64,000 nucleotides of DNA from Auanema rhodensis (GCA_964057225.1 OZ059900.1:14074001-14138000); one strand, 5' to 3'. Shown: positions 1 through 47,814, numbered from the stretch's first letter. Translations and numbers: made by a program. Notes: a model not told the origin generated them from the sequence alone.

Positions 1-538
1 CGCGCTATTCTTGATGAGTAGAATAGAGATTTTCCAATAGTTTTGCGATGTCTTTAAACTGTTTAAAAACCTAAATTAAATGATAATCTGCTCAGATTAG
101 TTGATAAACGTTTGAGAGACAAAATGTGTTTAATATGGATATACTCTTAGAAGAATATCATTTAATCGGGATTTGCGGAATGGAAGTTTTTTTGAGTACA
201 AAAATGTGTGATACATGTATTCATGTTAAACATTAAACAAGTTCAATAGATATTGGAATATTATTTTAGAATAGATAGATAATTGATTGATGGGTGGAGT
301 GATGCGACAATTAATGACGAAGGTTGAATAATATAGGTTGAATATTGTTGCGCTAGATCTCTCTTTTCTAGTTCTCTTCTTCTGACTATCTTTTATTTCT
401 CTTACCTGTATTCTGCATTTTTGATCCTATAGGAAAGGTCGCTCTAACAGGCACGGTCAAGAACGCCACCTAGTAGATCTTCATATTACTGTGACAGACC
501 TTCGAACTACATACCTGTCGATTAGCTCTCTTGTGTAA

Positions 539-2627
539 ATGCGATCCATTCAGATAGTAGTATTGGTATGCTGCTTTTTGGGCCTTGTGAGTTTCAAATT
601 AATTAAAGTTTTTAATAAAATTAGATGTTGTAGCATGCTCAAGGAAACTTTGAACTTGGCAAGTTCAGTCAAGTTGCTGAAAATATTTTGGATCGAAGAG
701 CTTATGCTCCAAAACCAACAGTGCCTCCTGAGCTTCGCAAATTTTTTGAACTCGATGGACATGCTCGTCAATTAGTAGACAGCCTCTTAGGACCACGTCC
801 AGGAGGATTTTTCCCAGAAAAAACTTATGAAATCGGCACTTCCTCATCTTCATCTTCTGGTTCATCTGGATCACCTCATCAAGTTTCAAATCTGGAGCGA
901 ACTCTTGAATCTTTTTTCACTGCACCTGAATCATCCGGTCCAGCATTCCCAAGCAGTTTCGGAGGAAACGGAGGAGGTTTTTCGCTTTCTAATGAAAACA
1001 AAAACTTAGCTCAGTTCGGAAGCACTGTTAGAAGAGCACCACAAGTAGTTTTTCATCATTTCTTTCTTTAAACTGTTATCCATCTTTACAGAAACAAGAA
1101 TCCGAATCTGAAGAAGTTGAAGGTTCAGGCGATGGTTCAGTCAGCTCAATCTCAGGAATTCCAAAGGTTTCACTCTTACATAAAGACTACCATAATTAAA
1201 CTTACCTTTTTGAGGTTTTCCCTAAAATACCATTATCTCCTTTTGTAAGCCCTAACAAGCAAGAAATCAAGCAACAAGTGCCTATTTTGGCAAATGATGA
1301 TCAGTCCCTTCCTGTTATTGCTACCATGCCTGAGGTAATTTTTGTGGAGTTTCAAATCTAATATCACATTTTTCATTTTGGGTACCTGAAGGAGGATTTT
1401 TACCCACAACAGAAATTCGTCGTGCTCCACAAAACTTAATGACTGCTCCATCTACTCCAGAAGAAACAGAGAGTGGTGAAGAGGTTTGTTGAGCAAAATA
1501 ATAAATAATCTAAATATTGTTGAAGGATTTATCGGAGAGAGCCAACAAGTCCGGTGGTTTGATAGGAACTATCTTCAAGTTGATTGGCATGAGTAACAAA
1601 ACCAACAAAAATGCAACAGAGAATGCTGATGACAAAAACGCACTAGGAAGAGCTGTATCTAATCTGATTGGCGGTGAGGATAGTCCTTTACCTGCTAAAG
1701 GCATGATTTCCAACGTATTGTACAACGCTCTCACTTCTTCACAGGTAGGATGAAAAATAATTTTTTTAAACTAAAATGAAACTTTTAGAACACAACCTCC
1801 GAGAAGGGCAATGGTACTCTTGTTTTAACTGATGCTCAGTCCGCTGCCATCGGAGAAAACTTAGAAATGGTCAAGAATCTTATTATTCAACCATCTTCTC
1901 CACTTTGTACTTCTAAACCAGATCCCGTTGATTTTGTGCTCGATTCATTCATGGGTCAGTGGTATCAGGTATGATAGCTTCAGTAGATTGAAAAGAAACT
2001 TACAATTTATAATAGGTCGTATACAGTCCACCACTATCCAGTGGACCTTGTTCAATGGTTGGATACAAGAAGCTTTCTAGTGTTAATGATGGCGGAGTTG
2101 GTTCAATCTTCGAAGTTTTCGAATACACCACAGATGGCTCTCAATATGCCAAGCCAAAAATTTCTTCAGGATATGCTATTGTTAAGTCACCTGGTGAATT
2201 AATATTCAGAACCACAAACAACCAAGAAGATGTTTTAGGTAAGGTTTATTTATATTTATTATTTGAAGAATGATTTTTTATTTAAAAAACTTTTAGTACA
2301 TGTTGTTCATCTTGGACCTGTCAATAGTGCTAATGAATACGAGTATGTTGTCATGTCTACAAATTGTAATTATCCAATTTACGTGTTTGCACGTGATCCT
2401 GTTACATACAAGCAGGTTAGATTTTATAATATACTAATTGAAGCAAATGCTTATCTTTAATTCTTATATTGATTTTGATCTTTCTTCAGAAGTACGAAGA
2501 TCACGTCAATAAGTACATGGAAGCTAACAATCTGGTCAATGGTATTTCTCGACTTTTCAACATTGTTGCTCCAGTTGAAAATAGCATGTGTTCCTTCCCA
2601 CCTTCATTATTCAATATGGCCCATTAA
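539..2627 (+). CDS. lpr-3: Secreted lipocalin-related protein (LPR-3-like), multi-exon, with a long low-complexity N-terminal region
   Basis: Signal peptide MRSIQIVVLVCCFLGL. The spliced C-terminal domain FMGQWYQVVY...CSMVGYKKL...YEYVVMSTNCNYPIYVFARDP has the lipocalin GxWY and FAR motifs. TAA at 2625-2627. Confidence 0.75.
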
Positions 2628-2908
2628 TTTCTCCATATTTTCCATATCTCATTGGGACTCAAGTTAGACCCAACTTTTTTTGAAAATACTTTAAAACTTA
2701 ATAATTTAATAATCATTAATAAATCAATATATTGCAACTAACTGTTTTTCTTTCACGAGATATACAAATTTTATGAACTGTATACAAACACGAAATAGTA
2801 AATCCAAATTTTACATTTGAGGGATATTTGTATTTTACCAACACCAGGATGAGACAGTTCATGAAAAATAGGTCAATAAATGGGTCAGTGGATGCGGAAT
2901 AACAAATA

Positions 2909-3130
2909 GAATGACCATGAAAGGTAACAAAAGAAGATATTCGTGGTAAAATGAGAAATGCTAATCGCTAAAGAGAAAAAAGAGAGAACAATGTAGCACT
3001 CCTTGTTCTTGACCTTTTGTATGATATCAGTCTTTTTGTCCTAATAATGAAGGTTGGCTATACATTTTAGCCAGAAATATTGAAAAAGTTGTTAAAATAA
3101 TAAACAAAAAAAGGAAAAGATACTTTATTC
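2909..3130 (+). repeat. ~220-bp direct repeat, left copy (partner at 15146-15366), flanking the foreign island
   Basis: gaatgaccatgaaaggtaac...gaaaagatactttattc recurs almost identically at 15146-15366. A 58-bp sub-copy follows immediately at 3132-3189. Confidence 0.95.
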
Positions 3131-3223
3131 TAAGATATTCGTGGTAAAATGAGAAATGCTAATCGCTAAAGAGAAAAAAGAGAGAACAACGTAAGTAGTA
3201 TACAAAAAGTTGACGCTGGCGCA

Positions 3224-3357
3224 CCTTTTTTGCCCAAATGCGATTTTTGCAGATTTTCAACATTTTAAAAACATTTTTTTATTGAAAATCATACTTAATT
3301 TCCCCAAAATGTGTCTTTTTTGAAAAATGATCAAAATATGCCTGGCGCACCACTTAA
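3224..3357 (+). repeat. ~135-bp direct repeat, copy 1 (copy 2 at ~8692-8828), bracketing the Maverick remnant
   Basis: tttttgcccaaatgcgatttttgcag...tgg(c/t)gcaccactta is present at both positions with few mismatches. Confidence 0.9.
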
Positions 3358-3407
3358 AGCCCACTTTCAATTTTTCACTTGTATTTATTGTTTTTTTTTG
3401 CTATTAA

Positions 3408-3854
3408 ATGAGCTTTTCCCAAAATCTCATCCCTCTGACAAATATAGATCTCCTTGCTTTGGTAGACACATGAAAAATCAAGAATTTCCGCGGCATCTCT
3501 ATAAGAGACACTTTATCACCACAAGGAATTGGAAAAACGGAAATAGGTATTATAAATTTAGATTCTTCTGAAGGTAAAAGAACTCATTGGGTCTGCTATT
3601 CCAAAAATGGAAAAAATATTTATTTTTTCGATTCTTTTGGACTTGATCCACCATTAGAACTTCAAGAATATTTAAAAGGATGTACTTCTAGGAAGCTTGC
3701 TTACGCAAAAGAAAAAGATAAAAAACCAGTAATCGAATTATCAACATTTCAAATTCAAGAATATAATACACATCATTGTGGTTATTATTGTTTGTTACTT
3801 CTAAAATTAGTAGAATCTCATAACTTCAGAAATTCTATTTTATCCTTTCTATAA
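3408..3854 (+). pseudogene. Maverick adenain-like cysteine protease (PRO) with one in-frame stop
   Basis: Manual translation: MSFSQNLIPLTNIDLLALVDT*KIKNFRGI...INLDSSEGKRTHWVCY...YFFDSFGLDPP...FQIQEYNTHHCGYYCLLLL, containing the HW, FDSFG and Q..CG.YC adenain motifs. TGA at 3471-3473. Not in the ORF track. Confidence 0.9.
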
Positions 3855-4545
3855 ATAATAAATAAAAATTTGAGATAAAAGATTTGGTTTGATACCAACG
3901 TTCCCAACAGTCATTGTATTATGACTATCTTTAATGATATAACGTTTATGTTCACATGATAGTGAATCATTATTCAAAGCTACTTTATTCTGACATTGTG
4001 TGAAAATAGTGTGTTTAACACTCCTAATAGTATATTGAGTCTTTCTTACAACAGTCTTATTGAAAAGGCTGTGCTTATAATCATCGACAGTCAACTCATT
4101 CGTGACAACATTCTTTTTAACACCTTTACTTTTCTTAGTTTCATCACCATCTAGAGTCTTAAAAGCATATTGTTTAGGCTTTAGAGCAACTATTTCAGTT
4201 ATAATGTTTCCATTCAATTGATCTTTAAATTTTCCGACAACTTTCTTATTCTCTGTGCTACGAAGTACGTGATCTTCCGGATAATCACTGAAATCGAAAT
4301 GTCTTCGAAAATAGATATCTTTTTCCACATCTTTGTAAAAATCTTCAGTCTTGATGTCATATATGAGACTGTCAGTATCTTGGTAACATAACTCTACATT
4401 TCGATATTTCTTCTGCATAACATTGTAATGAAAGTCATGCATCAACCACTTACTCAGATCTAAAATAGCAAAACCTACATAAATAGGTTTATTAAGTACA
4501 ATATTTGTTTTCTCCATTTCTACAGCAGATAACTCTTTGTTATAC
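3849..4545 (-). pseudogene. C-terminal fragment of protein-primed B-family DNA polymerase (Maverick pPolB)
   Basis: Motifs KPIYVGFAILDLSK, YQDTDS (motif C), VGKFKD, ALKPKQY and KSKGV. The 5' part is missing. Confidence 0.95.
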
Positions 4546-4719
4546 GAACAGATGATGATAATGAATTTGAAAAAATTTCCTTTTTTTGTTTTGAAAATTT
4601 AATTTTTTATGCTAAATTTTAATGCTAATTTTTTTTGGCTTATTTTTTATTTCAAATATGGTTTTTTAAATTTTGAAAAAAAAATTTGAATATTTAATAT
4701 TATCCGAATGATTTTTTTT

Positions 4720-6920
4720 TGGTGTTTTAGACAAATTTAGTCGATTTTAGTCGTTTTTTAGTCGTTTTCTGTTTAACCGTGCCCAAGTATACCTTTCTTC
4801 CTCTATTATGCAAAACTCCATTCATTTTCCTTATAAGTTTAATAATACATATGCTCATAATAATCCTTATCAGACCAGGAGGTCAGAATAATATGCAGGA
4901 ATGCAAAGGCTATTTCTATAACAACCGATATTTGGACGACTCCAAATATGAAGAAATCGTTCATGGCCTTTACAGGAGTATCCGTGAACGATAACTTCGA
5001 AAGAAGATCGTTTCTGATGGATATGGTAGAACTTGAAGTGGGCGAACGGTAAGCGTGTATAGAAAAGGCACATAATATATTATATTTAAGGCACACGGCT
5101 GAATATCTGCAACAAGTGATTGAGAGCAGGTTCAACCACTTCGAGTTGGACACGGAGAAAATTAGCGCTATAGTAGCTGACGGTGGGGCTAATATAGTGA
5201 AAGCTATTAAATCTACATCTCTGAATTAGTAAGAAATGTTTAATTATTCTATCTAATCCTTCTGTTGCAGTGTCGCCTGCTCGGCGCATTTATTGGACAC
5301 GTTTGTTCAAGAACTTTATAAAATAAATTATCTAAAGGAGTGCATCGAAAAAATAACTTTTTTCATTGCATCCCTCCATCGCTCTCACATGATGTATGGG
5401 TTTTATAAGGAGTAAGCAAAAATCTACCAATTCAACTAAATTATTATTTTTGATGTTGTGAAAAGCACAACTTACCAAACTTCGATATAGCTGGGTTAGT
5501 CTGCACGAGATGGAACTCGGTTTTCATGGCGATCTGTGACGTTTTGAACACAATAGATGCTGTCCATGATACCATTCTGAAGTTCAAGCTGCTGCCACTA
5601 TCCGAAGAAGATGTGGAATTTCTGAGGCACATAAGGGAATTATTCCTTCCCATATTTGAGTCAACGTTGGAGCTGTGCAAAAAGAATTCAACACTTAGCT
5701 GCTTCCTGCCTGTTCTTTATCATATACGAAGGAATATGAAACAATTCTCCCTTAGAGAAACAATTCCGAGTAGAGTACGCTTTTTTTTGGAAAAAATGGA
5801 ATCGATCTTCAATAGAAGATTTTCCACCTATATGAAAGACAGGATTTTAAGGCAGCACACTTTTATGGATCCTCGGTAAGTGGTTTGAGAATAATTAATC
5901 ACTTCATTACATTTTTCAGCTTTTCTTTATCTAAGATTCTCGAAGATTATGAGTAGGCTGAAGTTGAGCGTGATATCACTCAACAGTTCTCTGTATCGCA
6001 GATTTCTAACGAGAACACTGACGTCGAACACCAACAGAGTAATAATATGTGGGATTGCGTTATGGCAGAACGGGGAACCACACAATCAAACGGTTTTGAT
6101 CTTAGAGTACGTTTGATTATAGTTTCCATCAAAAGGTTATAAACTTTCAGGAACAGATACTATCTTACAAAATATCAGTGAAGAGTATTACAAAGTGGAA
6201 AGAAGATCCCATAATTTATTGGAAAGATAGGAGACATGAATTACCTCTGCTCTCCGATATAGCGCTTCATTTCCTTGCAACCTCGTCTACATCCGTAGAC
6301 TCTGAGAGATTATTCAGGTAAGTAACAACTAAATAGAAATTGCTTATTCTTATTTAGTCAAGCTAGGATCATTTACGGTAACAAGAGGAGATGCAGGACA
6401 ACTGGCAGGGTTGCTAGATCACTGCTTTTAATCGCGGCACATAATCAACTAGGAAAAGAAAGCGATTGGTCAAAAAACTGGACTGGACGTTATAACTCAG
6501 GACATACTCAAGAGGAAGTGGTAGAATCGGAAGAAGATGAACAATATATGGAAGAAGACCCAATGGAAATTATAGATGTTACTAGTTGAAATGTTAATAA
6601 AGTAAAATAGTTAAAATTAAGTAAAATTAAATAAAGTAAAATTAAATATATGATAAAATTAAAATAAATATAAAGGAATGTTGAACGATCAATCGATAAA
6701 TAATAATTCGGCAGAAAATCAACGGCGACAAATTACGACTAATATTACGAACTAAACGACTAATTCCACTATTATTTTTAGTCGAAATTGGTCGATTAAT
6801 TAGTCGACTAAAATTATGAATAATGCGTGATTAGTTGATTAGCCGAATCCGACTAATCTTGAAAAACACTGGTTAGTCGTTAGCCGAAATTGTAAAAATC
6901 CGATTTTTTGCCCAACTATA
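4720..6920 (+). mobile_element. hAT-superfamily DNA transposon with a degenerate, intron-containing transposase (~4780-6589); boundaries approximate
   Basis: Motifs VADGGANIVKA, CSAHLLD (CxxH), CTRWNS, FMDPR and the dimerization domain YWKDRRHELPLLSDIALHFLATSSTSVDSERLFS. TAGTCG/CGACTA subterminal repeats cluster at 4738-4765 and 6735-6880. CAGTGTTTTTCAA on the - strand at 6859-6871. Stops and frameshifts are present. Confidence 0.9.
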
Positions 6921-7126
6921 AAGAAAGGGCTCTTTTCTGCAATTTTGCGTCTTATAACTTCTCAGACAAACTCAAAAAATCAAAAAAAAAATATTTTGAT
7001 TGTTAAAAAACGATAATGAATTCAGAAAATCTTAAAAATTTTAAAAATCATGTTTTAAAGTATTTTCTGAAGTCTCCGAAATTTTCATAAACTGCTAGAA
7101 GTATTCTTTCTTGAATTTTAGAAGTT

Positions 7127-7726
7127 TCACCACACCATGAGTTCATTCATTTTTATTTGACAGAAACCATCTTGATACTTATACTCTGACATATCTGCTA
7201 ACACATTAGATGGTCTACTTTGATTGAAGTGTGAATATACTTTAGTTTCAATGATGATACAATTCTCTTTGTAATATCTTTTGATTGTAAAGAAACTAGT
7301 AAATCGATTTGGATAATCTTTATTCACTTTATTATTTGTACTATATATTCCTTCTTTACCTTTCCCTAAACTTCCATATTCATATTTCTTATTTGCAATC
7401 CCTTCTCTACATTCTGCAACACTAATAGAACGATGATTCAATTCCTTTTCTACTAAGTGCTCATATCCTGAAAAATCTGTATACATTGATACTTCACTTA
7501 TTAATTTCTTACACAACTTAGCTTCACTTGAGTATTCAATTATGTTCGGTTTGAAGACTTCATAACTTACTACTTTTGGTTGACAATTTAATTGTCTATG
7601 ATAATTGCATTTGTGTAATTTCGGAAGTCTGAAGTATTGTACTGGTGCATTAAAAGTACAAATTATTGCAACTAAAATATCATAATGAGTAAATAAAAAA
7701 AAGAAATAGAATTGCAATAGATTCAT
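7127..7726 (-). pseudogene. N-terminal fragment of a viral-type envelope glycoprotein, probably the nematode Maverick class III fusogen
   Basis: Signal peptide followed by a Cys-patterned ectodomain (C...FRLP...C...KPN..EY...A.LC.K...YTDF.G...S..EC...STNN...YP...NC...GFC...W). Intronless, between pPolB and MCP, and truncated. Confidence 0.7.
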
Positions 7727-7770
7727 TTAATATTACAAAAAAAATATTTTAAATAAATACAAAAGTAAAA

Positions 7771-8295
7771 ATGGTAGAAGCAGTTGACAGAATTCTTATA
7801 GTTGACAATCCAATTATTCAAGATACTTCAATTCCAAAAGAAAATTTGATAAGCATATTTCCCTCTAGTGAAACAAGTCTTAATCAACATGGTGAAATTA
7901 ATTTTATAATTGAAACTTGTGATCAATATCTATTACTTCATAAATCTTACATCTACTTAGAAGCTTCCTTGACTGAATTAGACTCTAGTGCATTAAGTGA
8001 CACTGATGAAGTATCATTAATAAACAATGGACCTATGATCTTATTTGATATAGCAACTTACTCAATGGATGATATGCAAGTTGAAAATGTCATTGATCCT
8101 GGAAGAGCTTCACTATTAAATTTACTATTTACACTATTTACTTGGAAACTTGGAACTAAATATGATAAGATAAAATATCTTGTCATTGCATTTCAGGCTG
8201 CTAGAGATAATAATTATCTAAATGCTGCAAAGTTCGATAACTGTGGGCTTGAAGAAATCTACGTTGAACTCAATAGTGAAAGATATCCATATGAG
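7771..8295 (+). pseudogene. Maverick double-jelly-roll major capsid protein, internally deleted and 3'-truncated
   Basis: The N-terminal SLNQHGEINFII...SYIYLE...NNGPMILF...DPG region is joined directly to the C-proximal YLVIAFQ...FDNCGL..IYVELNSERYPY motif. Confidence 0.85.
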
Positions 8296-8341
8296 GATAA
8301 TAGGGTTAAAGTTGTCAGTATTTAAGATAACTTCTTTATGT

Positions 8342-8690
8342 TTAGGATTTCATATCTATTTCTGTAATCCAAGAATTGAACTTATCTGGATATCCATACA
8401 ACTTGACTAGTAGCTCTTTGACACCTTTTCTAGTTCTCTTCTTCAAAACTTTCTCGATTTTACACTCCTGAGTAACATTATCATAAAGTATGAGCTCTTC
8501 TTCAAAAAAATTTCCTTTAATTTCTTCAATTTCTTAATAGAATACATTGTAATCCCTTCTTTATTTGGGTGAACTTCAGAAATTTTGAATTGTTCAGTAC
8601 TCCAATTAGGCAGATATCCTTTATCAAAGATGGCTTTATATTTTGTGATACAAACAGTATCACCAATCTTGAAAGATGCAAACTTATTGC
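8342..8690 (-). pseudogene. C-terminal end of the Maverick retroviral-like integrase with chromodomain, frameshifted
   Basis: FKIGDTVCITKYKAIFDKGYLPNWSTEQF, then in another frame EEIKGNFFEEEL...KIEKVLKKRTRKGVKELLVKLYGYPDKFNSWI...*. Confidence 0.9.
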
Positions 8691-8691
8691 A

Positions 8692-8828
8692 ACCCTTTTT
8701 TTTTGCCCAAATGCGATTTTTGCAGATTTTCAACATTTTAAAAACATTTTTTTATTGAAAATCATACTTAATTTCCCCGAAATGTGTCATTTTTGAAAAT
8801 GATCAAAATATGTCTGGTGCACCACTTA
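8692..8828 (+). repeat. ~135-bp direct repeat, copy 2; truncates the integrase
   Basis: Near-identical to 3224-3357. Confidence 0.9.
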
Positions 8829-8905
8829 CCCACAGCCTAACAGAATTTGAAAAAAAAATTTTATTCTTAAACATTTAATAAATTAAGCCACATTACAAAA
8901 ACATA

Positions 8906-10373
8906 CTAAACAAAAGCTCCATATAATGTGCTTCCATCGATGACAGTCACAAGGCATGATTTCTTATTTGGTGGCGATCCTTCTTCTTTTCTCTCTTTTT
9001 CGAGTTCCTCCTAAACAAAATGTTATTAGATAAATTTGTATTAGCAGTAATGAATTGACATACCATATAAGCTTTTTCGAATTCAACAGCAGGAGAAATG
9101 ATAATTTTCGCGCTGAAAATTGCAGCTTCGGATATGGCTTCCTGGTCGTTCTTCAATGGCATCATCGTGCACCCATAATTCATCCCGATGAGGCCTTTTG
9201 CTCCCCAAACTCCACCACCTACAAGTTCCAATCAGAATTTAATTAACCAAAAAAAATATTTACCTGAGTCACCACACGAGCTTCGACTTGTTCCAAGAAT
9301 AAATGGACCCAATCCAGAAAAATAATGACGACGAACAGAATGGATCAAGCCCGGCAAATATGAAAGAGATCCCACGTCATTCCCGAACCCGGCTAATGTG
9401 AATGGTATCGACTCTTCAGCATTTGCGATTGAAGGCTTTCGCTAAAATACGAAAATTAACAACAAAATATAAAAAATGTTTCAAGAACTTACATCAACGA
9501 CATTGGATCTGCTTTTCAGCAAGATGAAATCGTATGCTTCAAAAATTTTCGCCACATACACATCAACGCCGGTTTGTTCGTCCACCTCTTTTTCTGCACT
9601 ATAAAGTAACAACAAAATATAAGAAATATGCTAAGAACTTACTGATATAATTTCAAATTATCGCCAATGTTGAAGCGACGGTGTGATCCATGTCTGAATG
9701 TGACGAAAAATCTTGGATGAACACAAATTGTAGTCGATTTCGTCTGTTCCATCAAGTAAAACATCCATTTAGTGAAACATTTTGCTGATGGTGCAGGTTT
9801 GTGCGGCACTAAAAAGAGATAATAAGTTTTCAATATGAATTCGAGTTAAATCTCACACTCAGGATGATACGGGCTCATCGAACGCTCGTTCAAAATTTGC
9901 TCCATCGGTGTTCTTGGACGAGAAGTAGTTGTGAATTGAGCTAAAATAAGTATTTTAAGTAAAAATCCTTTTCGTATAAAAGCATACAAATTAAAGCTGT
10001 TAATGAAAGATAATGAATTTAATCGAAAATCCTACAAACCTTCCACGTTAGCAGGAGTTGTTGGTCGGGGCGGCATTTTATCAGGCGATAGAACGACCCT
10101 CTCGCAATAATACTTGAATTGCTGAAAAACGAACAGTAAAATTAGCGTTCGGCAAATTAGCACTTCAAATTTCACAGATTTAAACTTTGCTAAAACATAA
10201 AAGCTCACCTGATCAAAGGCAATGAGGTTTTTCAGCATCTTCCACATTGCGGAATTTTCTCTTCCAACACATTTCGCATCTTCGATTGAAAGATTTTCCA
10301 GAACCTTTGCGCACTTTTCGCCGTCATCTGCATAGATCTGACACACTTTTCCGACAACTTCTTGATCAGCCAT
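8906..10373 (-). CDS. Intact 8-exon intracellular trypsin/chymotrypsin-fold serine protease (wosp-like Maverick cargo family)
   Basis: Splices into one open frame with canonical GT-AG introns: MADQEVV...FVTFRHGSH (His)...AYDFILLK (Asp)...GTSRSSCGDSG|GGVWG..GLIGM (Ser)...YGAFV*. A TTTCAG acceptor lies 8 nt before the ATG. No signal peptide. Confidence 0.85.
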
Positions 10374-10969
10374 TTTATCAACTGAAAGCAAACGATTTTT
10401 TGAAAAAACGTAAACAAACAACATTAGGAGTTCTCTCTCTTTTTCCTTCAGTTCTTTCCTTTGGTGTGACACCTTCACCCTGGTGACCTTCTTTTCTCTT
10501 CCTCACTTTGACTGAGCACAATCACACATTTGCCCCAGTTGAACTAAACACACGCGACGCAACACGCTAGCGCGTTGTGAAACAAAATGAAAGAAACCGG
10601 GAATGCAAAATAATTTCTGTCCAAAATTAGAACTATCGATGCTAATTTTGATGTGACAGCTATCGACCACAATTAGCTTTTTTTTAAATTGCTTCCCAAA
10701 CAATCTACCCAAGAAAAATCAAAACTCACAAATCCAATAGTCATCACATTTGACGAATTTCAGTTGATTTTAATATGAATTCCAAAAATTTGCATATGAG
10801 AGAATTATGTTCTCAAACCCTTGTTTGCATCATTTCCCACTCCCCGGTTTGCTTAACAACTTTTCCATCTTTCTCTCTTTTTCAATCGTGTAAATTTATT
10901 CATTTTCATTATAAACGTTCAACTAATTAACTAATAATAATCCTTATTTACTAATAAATGTCTGTTTAG

Positions 10970-11390
10970 ATGGCGATGGAATATTTGACGGCGCAAAAGC
11001 TCGAAGCCTCGCTCTTCACGACTTCCAAGCCCGACGCCGAGTTGCATTTGTGCGTGGTGCCAATCGATAAACGTCATGCTGCTTCTTTTTACCACGGTCC
11101 ACATTCGATACTCAAAGAAGGCGAGAAGATCATCTTGTATAACGTAACTGACTCGGATATTCAACGCGAGGTTTTTCTTTCCCAATTTTTTAAACTAGTT
11201 GCTTTTTAGGCAGTTGTGAAGACAATTTCTTATACCACCGATATTGTGGTGTTTGAGCTCGTCGACCAAATCTTTCCGTGTTATCCAAATGGATTTTATT
11301 CGATGTTTCGTGGTCAATCCTACAGGCAACTGGGCATAAATGAACAGCGCATGCCAAAATGGAAAGAAGGAACCGTATCGGAAATGTACA
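10970..11390 (+). CDS. Second, divergent trypsin-fold protease: N-terminal half only (exons 10970-11170 and 11210-11390)
   Basis: HAASFYHGPH (His motif parallel to TFRHGSH), TDIVVFEL (Asp) and YRQLG...WKEGTVS. No GDSG exon follows. Confidence 0.7.
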
Positions 11391-11445
11391 GTATGTCTAA
11401 TTTGCACTCACTCGTATTAGTATTGTTCTTTTCTCTTTTGTAGAA

Positions 11446-12382
11446 ATGAGCACATTAATTCATTCGAGGTTAGATTTAGAATGATTTTTTTTATTGCTCT
11501 ACTTTTTTTAGTTTGATGTATTGGCAAGGTATTTTATATATATTTTTAGAATGAACTTGCGTCAGGATCCTCGAATCCAAAAATTGCTCGAAAAGGCGAC
11601 GCTTGAAAGCCTTTTTAAATGCTATTTTCAACGTGTCTATGGAACGAAAGAAATCACGGAGATGGAAAATGCATTGAAAAAACGCTCTGGCCAACTACGA
11701 TAAGAAAGATTCCTTATACGAGGTTGGTTTATACATTTATTACAATGTTAATGTTACAATTTTTTTAGAAGCTTCTTGAGAATGATGAGAATGCAGCTGA
11801 ACCTCTTGTCAATGAGTGTCTTGATAGACTTTGTGAGGTAAGTGGTGTTTATAACAATTAAATCAGTATTTTAGTAGCTTTATTATATATTATTTCAGAA
11901 AACGTTTAATCGTGGACAGAACCATTCTCAGGATACTCTTCTGGTTCTCGCAAAGCTGTTCATTAAAGTAGGCGATCATCGACTTGCTTGTGAGCTCATT
12001 TGGTGCAGTGCATCGCTTGCAATACAAGGTAATTTTTATTTTTTAATATTTATGCAATGTATTCGTTTTAAGATTTTATCGCGGATCGGAAGCTGAAGGT
12101 TTCGTTCCACTCGCATAACGGTAAGAGACGCTTCGCGACGACGCTCTCGCGTGATATCGGACGTCGTTTTTCCGTGTTCGAAATGTAAGTGTACAAATTG
12201 TGGTCCATTTTCTGTGTTTTATTTGTTTCAGGTGTCACTCCTCATTCTACACAAATAGTCATGGTGCTCTCGACGTGAAGAATGCATTCGAAGATGCGAC
12301 AGAATTTATCCAAAAGCTTCGGGAGTTGCAAATAATTGATGAATTGAAGAAGGAATTGGAGAAGAAAAACTTCAATATTTAG
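11446..12382 (+). CDS. Spliced gene with a PaREP1-like (HEPN superfamily) domain and one apparent frameshift at or before the A6 run (11677-11682); possibly fused to the upstream protease fragment
   Basis: Exons 11444-11468, 11550-11722, 11769-11837, 11899-12028, 12073-12184 and 12232-12382 give LAKLFIKVGDHRLACELIWCSASLAIQ...FHSHNGKRRF...FSVFEMCHSSFYTN...DVKNAFEDATEFIQKLREL. This matches the PaREP1 pattern GD..QASEK.W.AA...SH..L...LH.NFYEN...V..FI.KL. Confidence 0.7.
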
Positions 12383-12705
12383 TTTGTCTTCTGTGATTCA
12401 CCTTTCCACTACTTCCCTTGATTGTATGCCTTCACTCGGCAAAAAAAAAATATTCAAAAAAAAAAAAATAATAGAATTTAAAATATATATTATTTAATAT
12501 GCTAGAAAATTCTCTAAAAATTACATAAAGATTAATTCTAATAATATATGTATATATAAAGATCTTTACTCATTAGAAAATGGATCCAATTTTCAAGGTT
12601 GATAATAACTAATCCCAGATCTTATATCTTCATATATTCGTTATATTATCCAAATATTTATTCGTTTTTATATATTTGTCTATATTAAATCTTTGCCTGG
12701 AAATA

Positions 12706-13617
12706 CAGTCGTGTGCGAAATAGTTGGGACAACCAAAAAGAGAGTCCAGACGGCGAAACGCAAACTACAAACCAATCAAAAAATTTAATTTAGTTTTCAG
12801 GTTGAAGTAGCAACATATTGATTAAAAAACAAGTGACAATGATGAAAAATGAAATTTTCGAAATTTATATAAGTTTAAAACTGTATATAATGCTTTTTTG
12901 GTTGTTTTAAATGATGAAAAATTAAAATTTATAATTTAAGATGGTTAGGGGCAAGAAAACTACTCCAGAACTTCGAAGCATCATTATTGAAAAGAAAAAT
13001 GAAGGGCTGACCGTACGAAAGATTAGTGAGATGCTGGGAATCCCGAAAAGTACGATTCAGAATGTATGGACCAAACAAAACCAAGCTGAAACCAGGGGAA
13101 GAAAAAAAAAGACAACAGTAGGACAAGATTCTTTAATTATTAAACTCGTAGAAAGACATCCGGATATGACGTCGATAGAGTTAAGCCAGCATGTCCTACG
13201 AATGTTCAAGATTCATCTACATCCTTCTAATATACGACGAAGATTGTTGTCGAAAAACCTAAGAGCTCGTGTTCCAGCTCGGAAGCCTCTGATATTCTTA
13301 CGAATCCGAATAAGAATATAACGGAGGACCACTGTTTGAACGTCCAATTTCATAACAGCATACGGCAGGAAGCAGGTTCGTAAGATGTCATCCTGCCTTC
13401 AACACGATAAAGTGGCCCAACTTCGGAAGCGCTAAAACAGCCCCAAATCATGACGTTGCCGCCACCATGCTTCACCGTAGGTCGCATGAATTTAGGGTTG
13501 AATCGCTGGTTTGGTGGTCTTCTTACGAATCCTGGTCCGTCGTTTCCAAATAAGCAAAACTTGCTTTCATCGGTGAATATAACGGAGGACCACTGTTCGA
13601 ACGTCCAATTCAGATGC
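12706..13617. mobile_element. Rearranged Tc1/mariner element: left TIR plus HTH half (+), with the DDE segment inverted (-)
   Basis: TA|CAGTCGTGTGCGAAA end at 12704. ORF 12941-13321 encodes the paired HTH and RVPARKPL linker. The reverse complement of ~13410-13617 reads [20 protein letters not shown]...[17 protein letters not shown]. Confidence 0.9.
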
Positions 13618-14683
13618 GCAAATATGAAAGAGATCCCACGTCATTCCCGAACCCGGCTAATGTGAATGGTATCGACTCTTCAGCATTTGCGATTGAAGGC
13701 TTTCGCTAAAATACGCAAATTAACAACAAAATATAAAAAATGTTTCAAGAACTTACATCAACGACATTGGATCTGCTTTTCAGCAAGATGAAATCGTATG
13801 CTTCAAAAATTTTCGCCACATACACATCAACGCCGGTTTGTTCGTCCACCTCTTTTTCTGCACTATAAATTAACAACAAAATATAAGAAATATGTTAAGA
13901 ACTTACTGATATAATTTCAAATTATCGCCAATGTTGAAGCGACGGTGTGATCCATATCTGAATGTGACGAAAAATCTTGGATGAACACAAATTGCAGTCG
14001 ATTTCGTCTGTTCCATCATGTAAAACATCCATTTAGTGAAACATTTAGCTGATGGTGCAGGTTCGTGCGGCACTAAAAAGAGATAATAAGTTTTCAATAT
14101 GAATTCGAGTTAAATCTCACACTCAGGATGATACGGGCTCATCGAACGCTCGTTCAAAATTTGCTCCAATGGTGTTCCTGGACGAGAAGGAGTTGTGAAT
14201 TGAGCTAAAATAAGTATTTTAAGTAAAAATCCTTTTCGTATAAAAACATACAAATTAAAGCTGTTAATGAAAGATAGTGAATTTAATCGAAAATCATACA
14301 AACCTTCCACGTTAGCAGGAGTTGTTGGTCGGGGCGGCATTTTATCAGGCGATAGAACGACCCTCTCGCAATAATACTTGAATTGCTGAAAAACGAACAG
14401 TAAAATTAGCGTTCGGCGAATTTGCACTTCAAATTTCACAGATTTAAACTTTGCTAAAACATGAAAGCTGACCTGATCAAAGGCAATGAGGTTTTTCAGC
14501 ATCTTCCAGATTGAGGAATTTTCTCTTCCAACACATTTCGCATCTTCCTTGAAAGATTTTCCAGAACCTTTGCGCACTTTTCGCCGTCATCTGCATAGAT
14601 CTGACACACTTTTTCGACAACTTCTTGATCCGCCATTTTGTCAACTGAAAGCAAACGATTTTTTAAAAAAACGTAAACAAACA
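13618..14683 (-). pseudogene. Recent partial duplicate of the serine protease gene (copy of 9354-10420); lacks the catalytic Ser exons and is frameshifted in exon 1
   Basis: Near-identical exons and introns. catcttccttgaaag versus catcttcgattgaaag (net -1 bp). Cut at the Tc1 fragment. Confidence 0.92.
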
Positions 14684-15145
14684 TATTAGATTAATTCGGT
14701 CAAGAAAGAGGGAAAGTAGGAAAAGTTGTTAACAAACCCAAACTTAAGGAGAAAATAACTAATATTACGGCGCTAATGAGGGTTAATTAACTAAAAGAAC
14801 CTAAATTTTATGACCACAAAAAGAAAATTTTCACAATAAGGGACGGACAATTCGGGAACAAACAGCGAGAGTAAATGAAAATGATTTTTCTTTTTTTTCC
14901 TTTTTTTTCCCTTTTATCAAAATTAGCATTGATGGTGCTAGTTTTTATATTGAAATCCTTTAGCCTTCCCGTTTTCCTTAACTACCTAACTAAAACTTAT
15001 GGAGAAAATAACTCATTCTCTTTCACTCTAGCCCAACGCTTTGCGTGCACTTGGTTCAACTGCGAAATTGAGTCAACCCAGCAAATATTCATCTCTCTTT
15101 TGAAGTCAAATGGAAGCAAAAAATTACTTTTTAAAGAATCACCAT

Positions 15146-15366
15146 GAATGACCATGAAAGGTAACAAAAGAAGATTTTCTGGTAAAATGAGAAATGCTAA
15201 TCGCTAAAGAGAAAAAAGAGAGAACAATGTAGCACTCCTTGTTCTTGACCTTTTGTATGATATCAGTCTTTTTGTCCTAATAATGAAGGTTGGCTATACA
15301 TTTTAGCCAGAAATATTGAAAAAGTTGTTAAAATAATAAACAAAAAAAGGAAAAGATACTTTATTC
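15146..15366 (+). repeat. ~220-bp direct repeat, right copy
   Basis: Near-identical to 2909-3130. Confidence 0.95.
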
Positions 15367-16012
15367 AACAAAATATATTTGAATATTAATTCTAAAAACT
15401 AAAAAAGAGATTAGTTTGATGATTTTAATGAAAGAAAACATTAAATAGTTGTTGATTTCATCATAATATCTCATCCATAGTTTCATATTCAAATATATTC
15501 TGAAATCAGAATTTCTCTTTATTGAAGAATCTATTCTCGAAATACTTTTCCAATTCTCTTATTTATTTCTTTTTTTAATTTCATATTCGTTTTTCTTGTA
15601 TTTCAAAACATATATTTTAAAAAAATAACATAAGTCTGAATTAAATAAAAATTTTGTACATTTATTTGAATCTGTGAGAAATATTCTTATACAAATGCGC
15701 TATTGATTTATTGAGCATGTCTCAAGGGAGTGACGACAATGACAATTAGGGACGCAAGAAAGCATTATTGATTTTTCGCAAGATAGATTCTGTTGTTGAC
15801 ATCGTTTGCCACTTAACTGTATCTTATTTACTCATATCTATTCAAGTATAATCTAATGTAAATTGTTCAAATGTTGCCCAGAATACCCTGTCAAATTTGA
15901 TAACAAAATCGTTAACTTTTCTGCATAATTAAGCTCTTCAAATTTAACCTTCCTATATTTTGGTAAACAAATGAAAAATAACATTTTTAAATATTATCTA
16001 TATTTACAGAAC

Positions 16013-16902
16013 ATGGCCATTAAAAAACTAGAATGCTCAATGCAAGTGGCAATTTTTTGCTTGTATCTGATATCATGCTTCACACTTATTTTTTCTATCA
16101 AAAATAATTCTTGGCTAGATATTCAAACAAATGATAAAACATATCAAGTAAGTGATAAAATGAACAAAAAATTTATTTTTTGAATAGAAATTCAAGAGTT
16201 GTTAGAAATATACTTATTAACAATAAAAACGATACAAATTAAAATCTTTTAAATATTAAACTTAAGGTAGGACTGAACGACAATTGTGAGCTTTTACCTA
16301 AATCAATTCGTTGTGTATCATGGTCGGATAGCCAAGATAAAATTATAAATTTTCCCATTGATGAACATCCACCAATTTGTGAGTTTAACTTACAAGTAAT
16401 TTAATCTAATTTCATTTGAAAACAGTTTTGAAATGCGCCAATGTTTTGAAATGGGTTCTCTTGATTGTGATAACTCTTTGCATTGCTTGTTGCATTTCAT
16501 TTTTCTGCTGCTCCAAGAAAGCTGTCGATGAAGTGATACCCAAACCATTTATCGCCGCCTATCTTATGATCGGATGTAAGAAATAAAAACTATTTTCATA
16601 TCTAACCCATTACTTTCAGTATGTGCTTATATTCTGGTGCTTCTTTTGATTTGTGTTTGCAGAGCGTTTTCTTCTATAGTATTTCATTGGAATACAACTA
16701 GCTCACACCAGGTAAGGTCTTGTTATCATATATCATTCAATTACTGTTATATCATCAGGTTATGTTTGGCTCAGCGTATATACTATTTAGTTGTTCTGCA
16801 ATAGCTTATGCGTTAGCTATTCTGTTATATTATTTGCTGCTGAAATACTCAGAGCCATATAACATGGTGAACACAAACCCTGAATCTCTACAAATGACTT
16901 AA
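16013..16902 (+). CDS. Claudin/PMP22-like four-pass membrane protein (5 exons)
   Basis: TM1, then NSWL...VGLNDNC....RCVSW (W-GL-C-C loop signature), then three more hydrophobic segments. Confidence 0.7.
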
Positions 16903-17152
16903 AATCCTGAAAAATATTGATATCAACATCTGGTGCAATTTTCATTCCAAAATAAGTTCAATATTGTTCTGTTTCCTACGCAAAATAACTTAAATGTATA
17001 GAACTCAGGTATATGTGATGATGCTAGAATAATTCTTTCTTAATCTTTGTTTATATTGATTTAAATAGTTAATAATATGTCAGATAAAGAGTTTTTAAAT
17101 CCTTTTCATCAATCTTTACTCATTAACACTAAGCGATATTCGTATCTTAAAT

Positions 17153-17702
17153 TTAAAGAGCCTTCTTATCTTCAACTACTTGTTCGGAAGCTTTCTTCTT
17201 AGTTTCGCTGGAAACAAAGTCAGATGGAACCTGAAAAAAATTTTTTTACACATATTAATATATAAAATTAACCAACCAAATAACCAAAGATATAACGACG
17301 TCCAATCATTTCGCCGACAAAGAACCAGAAAATAACTTCAAAGGCAACGGCAGTGTAAACCAAGGATTCCTAAAAAGTGATCAAAATTAGAGAAAACAAA
17401 TAAAAAAACAATTGTAACAGGTGAGTAAAAAACTTACTCTGACTGTCAGAGCTTTGTATTGCTTGTTTGTGATGTATTGAACAACTTTAGTCCATTCGGC
17501 CTTGATCACTGGCCAGTCAGCCGATTTTGGAGGAGCAAGCTCATGCTTGGCAACAGCCTTAATTTGAAAAGTTTTTGAATAACTTTATGTATAGAACCTT
17601 AATGATAGCCCAGCGACGTGGGAATTGGGCTGCTTGATGACGGTAGATGGCTCCCCACAGGTTAGCCTGCTTTTCGATGAAGTTCATTTTACGAGTAGCC
17701 AT
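17153..17702 (-). CDS. asg-2: Mitochondrial ATP synthase subunit g (asg-1/asg-2 family)
   Basis: MATRKMNFIEKQANLWGAIYRHQAAQFPRRW...KHELAPP..ADWP...EVIFWFFVGEMIGRRYIFGYLVP. The family is certain; the paralog number is not. Not in the ORF track. Confidence 0.9.
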
Positions 17703-19071
17703 TTTACCTTAAAAAGATTTTTTTAAAAAATGCTTCAAAATATTTCAGTAATAATTAATAATTTTTATATTATGTTAACATTTTGCACATTCGAATAAAT
17801 CATTATAGTTTTGTATTAAATAAAAATATGTAAAGTAGATTTGTGAGGTGAAATGTATATTAAAGGACTGGAATGTGCGCCGCCTGTTTTGATATTATCG
17901 TTTCGGGACCAATAGTCTAAAGATTGAATATTGACACTTGGTCGCAGGAACCGTAAAAATCAAAATCGTTGGAGAAATTAACAGTTTTTTAAAAGATGTA
18001 ATAGAATATTGAAATATGCACAATTTTCAATCAAAACAACGATAAGCAATCAAAATTAAAAAAAACTCTGTGCAAAAAATTGATCAAATGTCAAGTATTT
18101 TGATGATAATTTATAAAAGTACTAAAGCAAATGTTCGTACGACAGAAATATTTGACTCAAATCAAGTATTGCTGAAAAGAAAGTTAATTTCCCAGTTAGT
18201 ATCAGTCTGTATTCTATATCTACATATAAATCATATAAATAAAAAAACAAACTAGGCAAAATAGATAAAGTTGGTAAACAAAGATTAGAGATGGAAAAAA
18301 ACAGTTGAGTCAAAAATGATTGAATATAGTTACTAGTTCACAAAACAATTATTTCTATGAAATTCTAGATCAGCCGAAAACATGTTGCCATACGGAAAGA
18401 GGAGCTGTTTTTGAAGCATGCATTTGGGTGAGAAGTAGTAAATATTAGGAGTGGAGAAAAGACAGATGGGTGGTTCGACACCGTTTAGTTCTTTTAGAGC
18501 AAAGATAGATTTTCTCATTTGATTCATTTAATATTTCAGTTAAGCTATTATAATAGCTATTATATTGAATGAAGAAATAAGTAATATGAACGAATATAAA
18601 GAAATATTATTTAAACAAAAGTAAACTACTATCCCTAAGCACTTGTACTTTGAATCCCTACCATTTCATTTATTTGGAACAAACATCATCTTTTTTCTCA
18701 AGTAACTCTCTCAGATCTTTTAAAAGTATTTGTATTACATGTGTTTCTTTGTGTTTTGAATCAGCACAACAGTGTCAGTATATCAAGAACTGCTTTTTTC
18801 CGATAAAATAAAAATTGGTCAACACTAATAAAGTCTTTTTATTTGTTGTTATTAATAAACATATTTTTCAATGATTTATTGCATGACTTTTCCTAAATAT
18901 ATAGTAGCTTCTCTAAGAAAATCTCGATTCCTTGCGGCAAGCCAAGGAAAACTAAAAAAATAAATTTTCATTCTGATTTTACGAAAATTAGCGAAAAAAT
19001 TAGTACATTATATTTCATAGGTTAATGGTTAGATTTAATTGATTACGGTTGATTAACATATTTGGATTAAT

Positions 19072-19113
19072 TGGAATGTCGCAACTATACATGGGGAACA
19101 GCTATTGGAATGT
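19072..19113 (-). promoter_or_regulatory. Two miR-1 8mer seed sites (ACATTCCA) in the vha-12 3' UTR
   Basis: TGGAATGT on the + strand at 19072-19079 and 19106-19113, 36-77 nt downstream of the stop. V-ATPase subunits are established miR-1 targets. Confidence 0.8.
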
Positions 19114-19148
19114 CGCGTCGGATTCGGAACTAATTTCTATCTGACAGT

Positions 19149-21083
<1,935 letters not shown>

Positions 21084-43390: not shown

Positions 43391-44119
43391 CTCTAAAAAA
43401 TTACAATAAGAAAAAAATTTGAAAAATTAATCGATAATCGACCGAGTTGACAAATGGATTGAATAGTATTCTCAACTGTCTTTAACACACAGTACACAGA
43501 GCAGTATATCTGACTGTGATAGCAATATCAATCAAATGATTTTGGAGCATCAACATTACTTTTATCAACCACTTTGATAAGGTTTAAATACTTAGTAATG
43601 ATTATAGTGACAGGCAGTCAAAAGAAGAAGAAGTTTATTAGAAACTGTCAATCATATCTATTCAACAACTATAAATATTATAAAAAGTGAATTTGATTTT
43701 TTTTTTCACAAAACTTTTCTCAAACATTTTGTATATATTGAAATCAAACAAACATATCACTTACATACGAAATGTTTGAAACTGAGATTTCGCGCGATAA
43801 TTGAATATGAACTTCTTTATCATTTGGAATTTGTAAATAAAAATATAACTCACTAAATGAGTTAAAATTTTGATAACTGCAAACTTCTCAGCTTATCTTT
43901 AAAACCATTTGTAGCTGCGAATTGTGAGCATTTGTTTTATAATAACATACAATGATTAGTATTCTCATGTTTTTAATATTAATTATTGTTTATAAACATC
44001 TTTTTACTAATAAAAACTATTCATTGTTCATATTAGTAACTTTGAAATTGCGTATTTCAGATTACAAAGACTTTGTTTTATTATTTAAATTATTGGAATA
44101 ATAGTAATACAATAATTAT

Positions 44120-45509
44120 TTATAAATTTTCATCATCAAATAGTCTTTTTAATAGTGTACCACCCATACTTGGAAATTTATACTGAATTGTTGATGTTGC
44201 CCAACCCATAGGAATTCGAATTGATTCCAAATTCTATAAAGCATATTAAAATTAAAAGAATTATTACAAAATTCTTCATCTACCTCAAATATTACTGGTC
44301 GGAACCGTAAATTTATACAGTTTCGCTGAAAGAATTCAGCTTCCATCATTCTAATAATATTGAGATTCAAATTTATAAACATATCGGAAGAGCTAGCTAC
44401 TTCGTGTAGTCGAACAAACGAAGGCGTATAACATACAACAATTTGCAAAGCCTAAACATCCATACTTGATAAAATTCCGTGTACGATAGCAACCTCATTG
44501 AAGAGTGTTTGAAGCGATGACACTATGTTTTCTTCTGAAATATATTGGGCAATATCAATTATTGGCCTAACAACATGTCGTCTCTGATTATTTCTGTAAA
44601 ATATTGTGAGATTATCGTACTCATGTCTTGAGTTTACTTCAAATTTTTGAGTAACCACCGATATTCTTTACGTTCCTCTCCTGTTGTTTCATAATGAACT
44701 ACGAGAACAACTGAAAAAACTTGAAATTTTTAAAGAAAACTCAAAAATCATTTTAAAAGCATTTTGCTTTTAGAATTGACTCATAATGCTTAAAATTGCA
44801 TACATTGATTAGGTATTCTCAATCTTGGTGAATCATCACTGATTGTTTGATCTAGAAAATAATCAAATTTACAATCACCACTATTTCACCTACTCCTAGA
44901 ATAACTGCCATCACATAACTGACCAACATCAAATAATTCTTTTAAGGAATATAATGTATCGACGCGATTCATTCTTTTTAGTAAACGAATAAAGTTATTA
45001 AGATTTTCATGAGAATATTTTTTGCTTAATAAATCAAACGGACTAATATCTCGCTGCATCATCTTGAATAGATCAATACTCAATATTTGATTGGAGCGAG
45101 ATGTTTCTTACCATGATAGCATCACTGCTCATACCATATTCACAAGCAATGTATTCCCAATTTTTCATAGAACCAAATGCTTTTATGTTCAAATGAGCAG
45201 ACAACATTTCTTTTGCCGTGGTAGTTAAGTCACCTATTCTGAATGTAAACATATACTTCTCAAATCATGTTGAAGAGGAGTACAATAAATGTGAGGAAAC
45301 GTTGAAGACCATTTGGCCTAAAGTGTACTTTGGACCAAACTTTAATGTTCCCAAAAAACCTGGAGCTTTGCCAATTATATTCGAAGGCTTAATTACAATT
45401 AATAGATACTGTATGAACTTGAATACTAAACTTTTTTCTCATCATCTGAATCTATTTCTATCGTAACATTACATAGACTATTATCGTCAATCATATCGGC
45501 TTCATCCAT
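44120..45509 (-). CDS. actl-1: Death-domain + SEFIR adaptor (Act1/CIKS-like), copy A
   Basis: Death domain LSAHLN...KNWEYIACEYGM...ISPFDLL...FIRLLKRMNRVDTL. SEFIR motifs QIVVCYTPSF...IIRMMEAEFFQRNCINLRFRPVIF...IPMGWATSTIQYKFP..TLLKRLF. The 5' exon structure is tentative. Confidence 0.75.
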
Positions 45510-45781
45510 TCTTCAACTACTATGTCTACAAGTTTTAAACTTTTTTTTAAATATATATAACAGATTTGAAACAACTGTAGTTCAAACATATGACACAGAA
45601 TATCATATTTATTAATCACAACGCCTTTCTCTATGAGTACTTTTAATAGAATATTGCATTTTTAACATCATAATGACTACATGTGGAATTATTATTTTAT
45701 AATTATTTAGAAATAACTTTTTCAAGGTATTTTGAATTGATTTAGCAACACATTTTTGTTATGAAATACGTTTTGAAAACG

Positions 45782-47608: not shown

Positions 47609-47765
47609 ACAGAAGAATTCTAAACATATTTCACTAAATATTCTTTTTATTCAAACAAATAAAATATATTTTGACAATTAGTTATAACCTTGTGAGAAAA
47701 AAGGTTAAAATTTCAATTCAGTTTTACAAGAAAACACGAAAAAAAGATAAATTGTGTTCGCACAT

Positions 47766-47768
<3 letters not shown>

Positions 47769-47814
<46 letters not shown>
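47769..47814. repeat. (TA)n microsatellite at the inner end of the left palindrome arm; a shorter counterpart lies at ~48373-48385
   Basis: Seen directly in the sequence. Confidence 0.95.

Follow-up and report, generated by a model that had tools for sequence, protein, structure and literature searches.

A probable rearranged Maverick-type cargo cluster with a WOSP protease gene and a stand-alone PaREP1-like HEPN gene in Auanema rhodensis

This study deals with a 64,000-nucleotide stretch of the Auanema rhodensis genome (GCA_964057225.1 OZ059900.1:14074001-14138000), referred to here as the window, and in particular with two genes at positions 8906-12382 that diverge from a common spacer, a WOSP serine protease gene on the left and a PaREP1-like HEPN gene on the right. 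The window has eukaryotic, nematode-like sequence, its introns being short and of the GT..AG type. A sequence-only reading of this locus had proposed that the right-hand gene is a single gene joining a protease fragment to a HEPN domain, and that it forms with the left-hand protease a toxin-antidote or protease-regulated effector pair built from the cargo of a neighbouring Maverick. Our analysis leads to another account, namely that window 8.7-15.4 kb is probably a rearranged Maverick/Polinton-type cargo cluster beside Maverick debris, rather than a two-gene toxin-antidote module, and that the right-hand "gene", judged by sequence comparison, is a composite of a protease-bearing block and a separate HEPN gene. 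The window was compared with eight other HEPN loci (L001-L004 and L007-L010) and two wosp loci (L005 and L006), and Pfam, PDB searches and structure prediction were run on relatives of the window's spliced proteins.

The left-hand gene, which we call WOSP protease copy A (8906-10373, minus strand), is predicted to have eight exons (10209-10373, 10040-10121, 9857-9940, 9643-9808, 9493-9598, 9264-9441, 9064-9218 and 8906-9010) separated by introns that are all GT..AG. The splice-site model gives an open frame of 346 codons without internal stops, in which the GDSGGG motif is assembled over an exon-exon junction, and three of the seven intron positions are common to relatives. A read-through open reading frame (ORF) at the 5' end of copy A matched the Auanema fragment P0020, and a search with P0020 led to full-length relatives of 302-319 aa from C. 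bovis, C. briggsae, C. sp. 36, C. remanei and C. japonica. The nearest retrieved relative is P0021 of C. bovis, whose residues 6-281 align with residues 4-288 of copy A at 37.5% identity (blastp, E 3e-52); copy A also matches the MSFT-1-like protein P0022 (blastp, E 2e-18) and the WOSP family profile (E 9e-35, profile positions 5-281). The predicted protein appears to start with a ubiquitin-like-domain-type N-terminus, as suggested by the UniRef name of P0025 and by an alignment with the P0021 N-terminus that begins at residue 4, and continues with a linker and a putative trypsin-fold (HtrA-like) protease domain.

The WOSP proteases, first named WASP, include the C. briggsae toxin MSFT-1 (Widen et al., 10.1101/2022.07.12.499685); the name 'wosp' is found in PMC10680173. 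The residues K29, H148, D184, S256 and G273 are given for MSFT-1 (10.1101/2022.07.12.499685), and the MSFT-1-like P0029, a 325-aa C. briggsae protein from one cluster of relatives, has the same five residues. H150, D189 and S260 of copy A align with H148, D184 and S256 of P0029, in agreement with the proposal that the left-hand gene is an intact His-Asp-Ser protease. By these alignments copy A is a member of the WOSP family of MSFT-1 with its triad kept, and it is probably functional as a protease. Domain databases add modest signals from the same family: Pfam Trypsin_2 matches seven of the eight WOSP relatives scanned (P0021-P0027), every one below cutoff (E 3e-4 to 0.07), and in the PDB the family profile weakly matches the S1 protease exfoliative toxin A (E 0.012). 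The AlphaFold2 model of P0021 had a confidence score (pLDDT) of 37, too poor for a structure search, and Pfam scans of single exons of copy A and of the right-hand gene gave no matches.

Like WOSP proteases and MSFT-1, copy A has an N-terminus that aligns with the ubiquitin-like part, a linker and a His/Asp/Ser protease domain, falls within about 320-346 aa, contains introns and adjoins Maverick remains. It differs in a longer C-terminal tail, in an identity of only 28% to the MSFT-1-like protein, and in that neither an antidote-like partner nor a MULE was identified beside it. A parallel had been drawn with msft-1 as a wosp-derived gene fusion; the preprint describes instead a wosp gene captured by a MULE transposon (10.1101/2022.07.12.499685). 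In exon 9064-9218, at the column that holds G273 in MSFT-1, copy A has a Gly, in contrast to the Glu of five out of seven aligned relatives. The sharing of this Gly by copy A and the MSFT-1-like protein is a lead only.

The gene on the right is a stand-alone PaREP1-like HEPN gene (11551-12382, plus strand) of 210 codons in five coding exons, with one frameshift. It is collinear with P0001, P0010, P0011 and P0013 (208-210 aa), and its introns lie at the same positions as in relatives; the exons measure 171/66/130/112/148 nt in Auanema and 171/69/130/112/151 nt in three other loci (two copies in C. sp. 36 and one in P. pacificus). The frameshift is seen in the coding length, 634 bases in the window versus 633 in four intact relatives. 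At the DNA level the gene is 90.9% identical to its counterpart in L003, 81.7% to that in L001 and 70.5% to that of P. pacificus (L002). The last four exons retain all 12 of the family-conserved residues that were checked in them, and have no other defect. As the sequence stands, however, the HEPN domain is not reached in a single frame, by either the stand-alone or the joined reading, and the window copy is with about equal probability a very young pseudogene or an intact gene behind an assembly error.

The relatives argue that this gene begins at Met 11551. A single HEPN exon, searched against all databases, matched nine proteins (109-210 aa), among them four complete relatives, P0001 (210 aa), P0003, P0004 and P0008, whose start Met corresponds to window 11551. 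With P0001 as query, the range of 115-367 aa yielded 11 relatives, all of 168-220 aa, from C. sp. 36, Pristionchus pacificus, Auanema, C. auriculariae, Mesorhabditis, Meloidogyne hapla and Aphelenchoides besseyi; the same start is used by P0001, P0010-P0013, P0015 and P0016, and shorter relatives begin further in. No match longer than 220 aa, and no protease-like or other N-terminal extension, was seen among the relatives in this size range. Scans of viral and metagenome contigs found no HEPN relatives, and the region gave no matches in Rfam and tRNA scans.

The HEPN assignment, first made for the C-terminal side of the right-hand gene, is supported by the predicted fold of a close relative, P0010, whose gene has 91% DNA identity with the window copy. 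The AlphaFold2 model of P0010, built from a 17-sequence alignment, has pLDDT mostly >80 across the last 120 residues, and the five best informative Foldseek matches to it are all HEPN structures (2q00, 1ufb, 2hsb, 1o3u and 1wol), with probabilities of 0.96-1.0 and target-relative TM-scores of 0.65-0.75; 2q00 comes first with a probability of 1.0 and a target-relative TM-score of 0.66-0.75. Of the Foldseek comparisons that had been suggested for both proteins, that of the HEPN relative thus points to 2q00. In the PaREP1/8 branch of HEPN proteins a His is conserved and the Arg of the Rx4-6H motif is absent, and 2q00 is listed as a PaREP1/8 structure (PMC3710099). The active-site H163 is kept in the six closest relatives and in the window, and the closest Arg before it falls outside a spacing of 4-6. 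From the model we conclude that the C-terminal region is a PaREP1-like HEPN domain. By analogy with other HEPN proteins, the protein most likely binds or cuts RNA. PDB sequence searches gave chance matches only for single HEPN exons and no real match for the HEPN family.

The spacer between the two start codons measures 596 bp (10374-10969), as the estimate of about 600 bp had indicated. It holds U1 (10483-10577), a sequence that lies upstream of the HEPN gene in relatives (L003 6572-6666, 90.5%; L001 9614-9691, 83%), and a promoter-like element of about 120 bp (10847-10969) that recurs directly 5' of protease-type start codons. This element also occurs at L003 14146-14272, at L003 11640-11728, and in the window at 14712-14761 (inverted) and 4793-4870, and is a candidate for a shared promoter or leader of cargo genes. 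A second HEPN-gene upstream sequence, U2 (11409-11485, plus strand), is 96% identical to L001 9790-9866 and absent from L003. U1 and U2 are sequence upstream of the HEPN gene in C. sp. 36, and blastn places them 98 bp apart in L001 versus 831 bp in the window. The intervening 831-bp block (10578-11408, plus strand), delimited by blastn against L001 and L003 and by alignment of the upstream regions, contains the promoter-like element and a protease 5' fragment, together with the first bases of the intron that follows this fragment; these bases, after 11390, match the beginning of the L003 protease gene's intron. An 88-bp stretch of proximal upstream sequence common to L001 and L003 is missing in the window, and the approximately 65 bp before the HEPN ATG, with a TTTTTAG acceptor, are conserved in three loci.

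The protease piece in this block is a 3'-truncated WOSP-like fragment (10970-11390, plus strand; exons 10970-11170 and 11210-11390) that opens at ATG 10970. Its FYHGPH and DIVVF motifs fall in the columns that hold the catalytic His and Asp in WOSP proteases, and it matches the WOSP profile (E 9e-8) with H41 and D77 in triad columns, confirming that the right side opens as a related protease. The Ser-bearing half is absent through one truncation, and there is no ubiquitin-like domain. A complete relative of the fragment is found at L003 14277-16056, where exons read by homology contain the His, the Asp and GDSGSG, also without a ubiquitin-like part; its first exon and the fragment are 52% identical over 65 aa. 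No splice model enumerated for the annotated 216-aa L003 protease has all three motifs, and Pfam gave no matches on the L003 ORFs. The analysis supports the proposed descent of these genes from Maverick-type cargo.

These observations bear directly on the proposed protease-HEPN fusion, which depended on in-frame splices from 11390 to 11444 and from 11468 to 11550 through a 25-nt micro-exon (11444-11468, plus strand) that lies inside U2. Both splices do use GT/AG and keep the frame. However, the joined reading stops upstream of the HEPN domain because the HEPN gene carries one frameshift, and the bridging introns are not common to relatives because the micro-exon donor, GT in the window, reads CT in L001, and L003 has no U2. 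With none of the relatives found being fused and most of them starting at Met 11551, a single protease-fragment/HEPN gene is not supported. We propose that the cluster would comprise an apparently intact WOSP serine protease gene, a stand-alone 210-codon PaREP1-like HEPN gene, and a truncated WOSP duplicate next to Tc1 debris, and that recombination may have put the 831-bp block, with its promoter-like element of wosp type and a second protease gene's 5' part, upstream of the HEPN gene. The protease-to-HEPN reading would then be an accident of the junction, in which an orphan splice donor is by chance followed, in the HEPN leader, by AG dinucleotides.

The truncated duplicate is WOSP copy B, a pseudogene fragment on the minus strand (13618-14689) that is 97.3% identical to 9354-10427. 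It has kept its start codon, has lost the 3' end with the Ser part, and carries one frameshift. Between it and the HEPN gene lies Tc1/mariner-type transposase debris (12941-13487), with a helix-turn-helix part on the plus strand (12941-13318; Pfam HTH_Tnp_Tc3_2, HTH_32 and HTH_SB) and a catalytic piece on the minus strand recognized by eye. Parts of the spacer (10590-10911) recur inverted upstream of copy B (14674-14979) at 73-77% identity, versus 97% for the genes, and this contrast suggests that the spacer underwent an older rearrangement.

On the other side of copy A lies Maverick debris. A fragment of a Maverick major capsid gene with a double jelly-roll (7771-8322, plus strand) is recognized by Pfam (PF21738, DJR-like_dom, E 3e-9, above cutoff), and further left a pPolB-like fragment with a DTDS-type polymerase motif (3849-4517, minus strand) was identified by eye from the ORF translation; this and the by-eye integrase-like ORFs found no support in Pfam, PDB or PHROGs. 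No complete Maverick core genes were seen in the left-hand debris, and no Maverick terminal inverted repeats (TIRs) were found in window 1-20000. What the two genes lie beside is Maverick debris, of which the capsid fragment is supported by Pfam; a complete Maverick with its inverted repeats was not seen in the window. Adjoining the pPolB-like fragment is a terminal-type sequence, T (2909-3791, plus strand), of which 2909-3130 recurs at 15146-15366 (99%) and 3226-3356 recurs, at 96%, at 8699-8828 (plus strand), just 3' of copy A. Positions 3432-3791 of T match L002 8440-8775 (82-87%) and, inverted, L002 10865-10926, and the inner part of T is homologous to the inner terminal-repeat and subterminal part of a HEPN-carrying element in P. 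pacificus.

This P. pacificus element (L002 8061-11306, CM026579.1) is 3.25 kb long and has TIRs of about 455 nt, 375 nt of them perfect, flanked by hexamers that agree at 5 of 6 positions. A single gene is annotated inside it, the HEPN gene encoding P0011, and the element has no transposition genes. Nothing in the window matches its outer 375 nt. Polintons have terminal repeats of 100-1500 bp and target duplications of 5-8 bp (10.1101/2023.08.22.554363). The P. pacificus element resembles non-autonomous TIR elements in its repeats, in a possible 5-6-bp duplication and in its one cargo gene, and its one link to Mavericks is the 82-87% identity of its inner end to the window sequence by the pPolB-like fragment. 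Pieces of T are found just 3' of wosp copy A, of the wosp gene for P0023 (L006), and of HEPN in L003 and L002, in inverted orientation in L003 and L006. We infer that the terminal cargo slot that carries the wosp genes also carries the HEPN genes.

Movement of the HEPN family between genera is best seen between C. auriculariae (L007) and P. pacificus (L002), where the HEPN genes are 90.07% identical in DNA over 1007 bp, with introns and short flanks included, and the similarity stops abruptly past the short flanks. Members of the family occur patchily in distant nematode groups, at 55-68% protein identity to P0001. Intron identity was also considered as proof of recent transfer for the pair from C. 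sp. 36 and P. pacificus, and was rejected in view of saturated silent sites; the claim of recent transfer is based solely on the C. auriculariae/P. pacificus pair. In Meloidogyne hapla, four tandem HEPN copies with a period of 2896 bp are present at L009 1226-10757.

The HEPN genes also show an unusual pattern of sequence change. The ratio of non-synonymous to synonymous substitution rates (dN/dS) between the window gene and its closest copy is 0.88, and since the split of the window and L003 copies non-synonymous changes have outnumbered synonymous ones on both branches (10:1 and 17:4). Introns at the same position in distant HEPN copies are 73-93% identical, versus 62-66% for introns at other positions, and fourfold-degenerate sites of the same gene pairs are saturated. 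Better conservation of introns than of fourfold-degenerate exon sites between distant genera was observed among the window, L001-L004 and L007-L009. The evidence is evenly poised on a wider proposal, that the PaREP1-like HEPN genes may be a third Maverick/Polinton-associated cargo family of nematodes after wosp and krma, occupying the same terminal slot, moving across genera and present alone in a young 3.25-kb TIR element in P. pacificus, with fast exons and well-kept introns as might be expected in RNA-level conflict. In the literature searched, wosp and krma are the only nematode Maverick cargo families named.

Comparison with known systems gives likenesses and differences on each side. The HEPN genes resemble those of the KRMA kinases, the second described nematode Maverick cargo, in containing introns, in cross-genus DNA conservation and in patchy occurrence; unlike KRMA, the protein has the HEPN fold and no ubiquitin-like N-terminal domain, and residence in a complete Maverick is putative for HEPN. 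The PaREP1/PaREP8 branch of HEPN and its expansion in Caenorhabditis have been described (Anantharaman et al. 2013, PMC3710099; structure 2q00). With that branch the family shares the helical fold with 2q00 as best match, a His without an Arg at the Rx4-6H distance, and occurrence in nematodes, and it differs in missing the Pfam PaREP1 cutoff and in having an extra helical N-terminal part of about 85 aa. Unlike the Caenorhabditis expansion reported in 2013, the family described here is found in several nematode orders and in a mobile-element context; the two may be the same set of genes. Prokaryotic HEPN toxin systems such as HEPN-MNT likewise have the HEPN fold and a conflict-type genomic context, but the window gene lacks an MNT partner and a canonical Rx4-6H site, and is eukaryotic with introns.

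If the two genes formed a functional pair, one might look for them together elsewhere. Both families are present in only one of the eight other HEPN loci (L003) and in neither of the two wosp loci, and in L003 the HEPN and protease genes are 6.6 kb apart on the same strand. In the loci examined, the expectation of a conserved divergent pair is not borne out, and the toxin-antidote reading, which would have the two linked genes kept together in relatives, is not supported. Seven of the eight other HEPN loci have host-gene neighbours. In Caenorhabditis bovis three tandem wosp genes lie within 14 kb (L005 2563-16240) with no HEPN gene nearby.

Several of our results weigh against a cargo-cluster reading, or limit its reach. 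The gene model of copy A was predicted by us from genomic sequence, and the HEPN fold evidence comes from P0010 and not from the window's own protein. The Foldseek E-values are weak (about 0.13), and the Pfam PaREP1 cutoff (PF05942, 24.4 bits) was not reached in any relative scanned, the best score being 15 bits (E 0.024, P0009), with no match for P0001. No core Maverick genes were detected within 10 kb of other HEPN copies with the window's degraded fragments as probes. The HEPN frameshift may be an assembly error, and the splice sites proposed for the fusion are canonical, so that a minor chimeric transcript may occur. A chimeric gene of protease fragment, 25-nt micro-exon and HEPN, paired with the divergent WOSP gene as toxin and antidote or as a protease-regulated effector, would draw on that canonical splicing, with GT/AG at all four junctions and the frame kept, as well as on the loss of the native acceptor of the donor at 11390, the head-to-head arrangement across 596 bp, the Gly at the G273 column of copy A and the role of HEPN proteins as toxins in many prokaryotic systems (PMC3710099). 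We nevertheless consider it very improbable, since its joined frame hits a stop before the HEPN domain, its micro-exon donor is not conserved, fused relatives were not found in the 115-367 aa search, the protease fragment lacks the Ser and half of the fold, and the single other locus with both families has a different orientation.

In another rival account the extra base would be an assembly error and the HEPN gene intact, with WOSP and HEPN as two working cargo genes of one element; HEPN would now owe its transcription to the captured wosp-type promoter and its release to trans-splicing at the acceptor just before its ATG. The 12 kept residues and otherwise sound last four exons, the conserved acceptor region before the ATG, the promoter-like element 5' of three protease-type genes, and L003 as a second locus with a HEPN and a protease gene would all be in keeping with this. 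The coding length that is off by one base from four relatives and the missing 88 bp of shared upstream sequence speak against it, as does the dN/dS against the closest copy, though the excess of non-synonymous change is common to both branches, and we regard such a working pair as unlikely. The least credence of all we give to the idea of ordinary host genes, inherited vertically and by chance close to transposon debris, that have no history as cargo or of horizontal transfer. Host-gene neighbours and the lack of a detected core Maverick gene in seven of the eight other HEPN loci would fit it, as would the saturated silent sites between the C. sp. 36 and P. pacificus copies. It is opposed by the 90% identity of Caenorhabditis and Pristionchus copies over exons, introns and short flanks with its abrupt end, by the perfect 375-nt TIRs around the P. 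pacificus HEPN gene, by the patchy distribution at 55-68% protein identity, and by the terminal-type sequence common to wosp flanks. A rearranged Maverick/Polinton-type cargo cluster is the account that we prefer.

The remainder of the window is of a different character. Beyond about 15.4 kb it looks by eye like ordinary host genes, including ORFs at 19559-20925 (minus strand) that resemble V-ATPase B subunit exons. There is also an inverted duplication of about 3.9 kb, with arms at 43864-47781 and 48373-52247 that are 96-100% identical around a centre of about 590 bp; each arm has an ORF resembling, by eye, an exon of a cation-diffusion-facilitator transporter.

In summary, the failure of the fused-gene proposal saves effort on a fusion that has no counterpart in relatives, while the apparently intact copy A, with one unusual MSFT-1 residue, is a reasonable candidate for descriptive follow-up. 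The signs that the HEPN family is cargo are its DNA identity across genera, its terminal-slot context and the TIR-bounded element that carries it in P. pacificus. If this is true, HEPN cargo would widen the picture of what virus-like Mavericks carry between species, and the Caenorhabditis expansion of PaREP1-type proteins noted in 2013 would gain a genomic setting.

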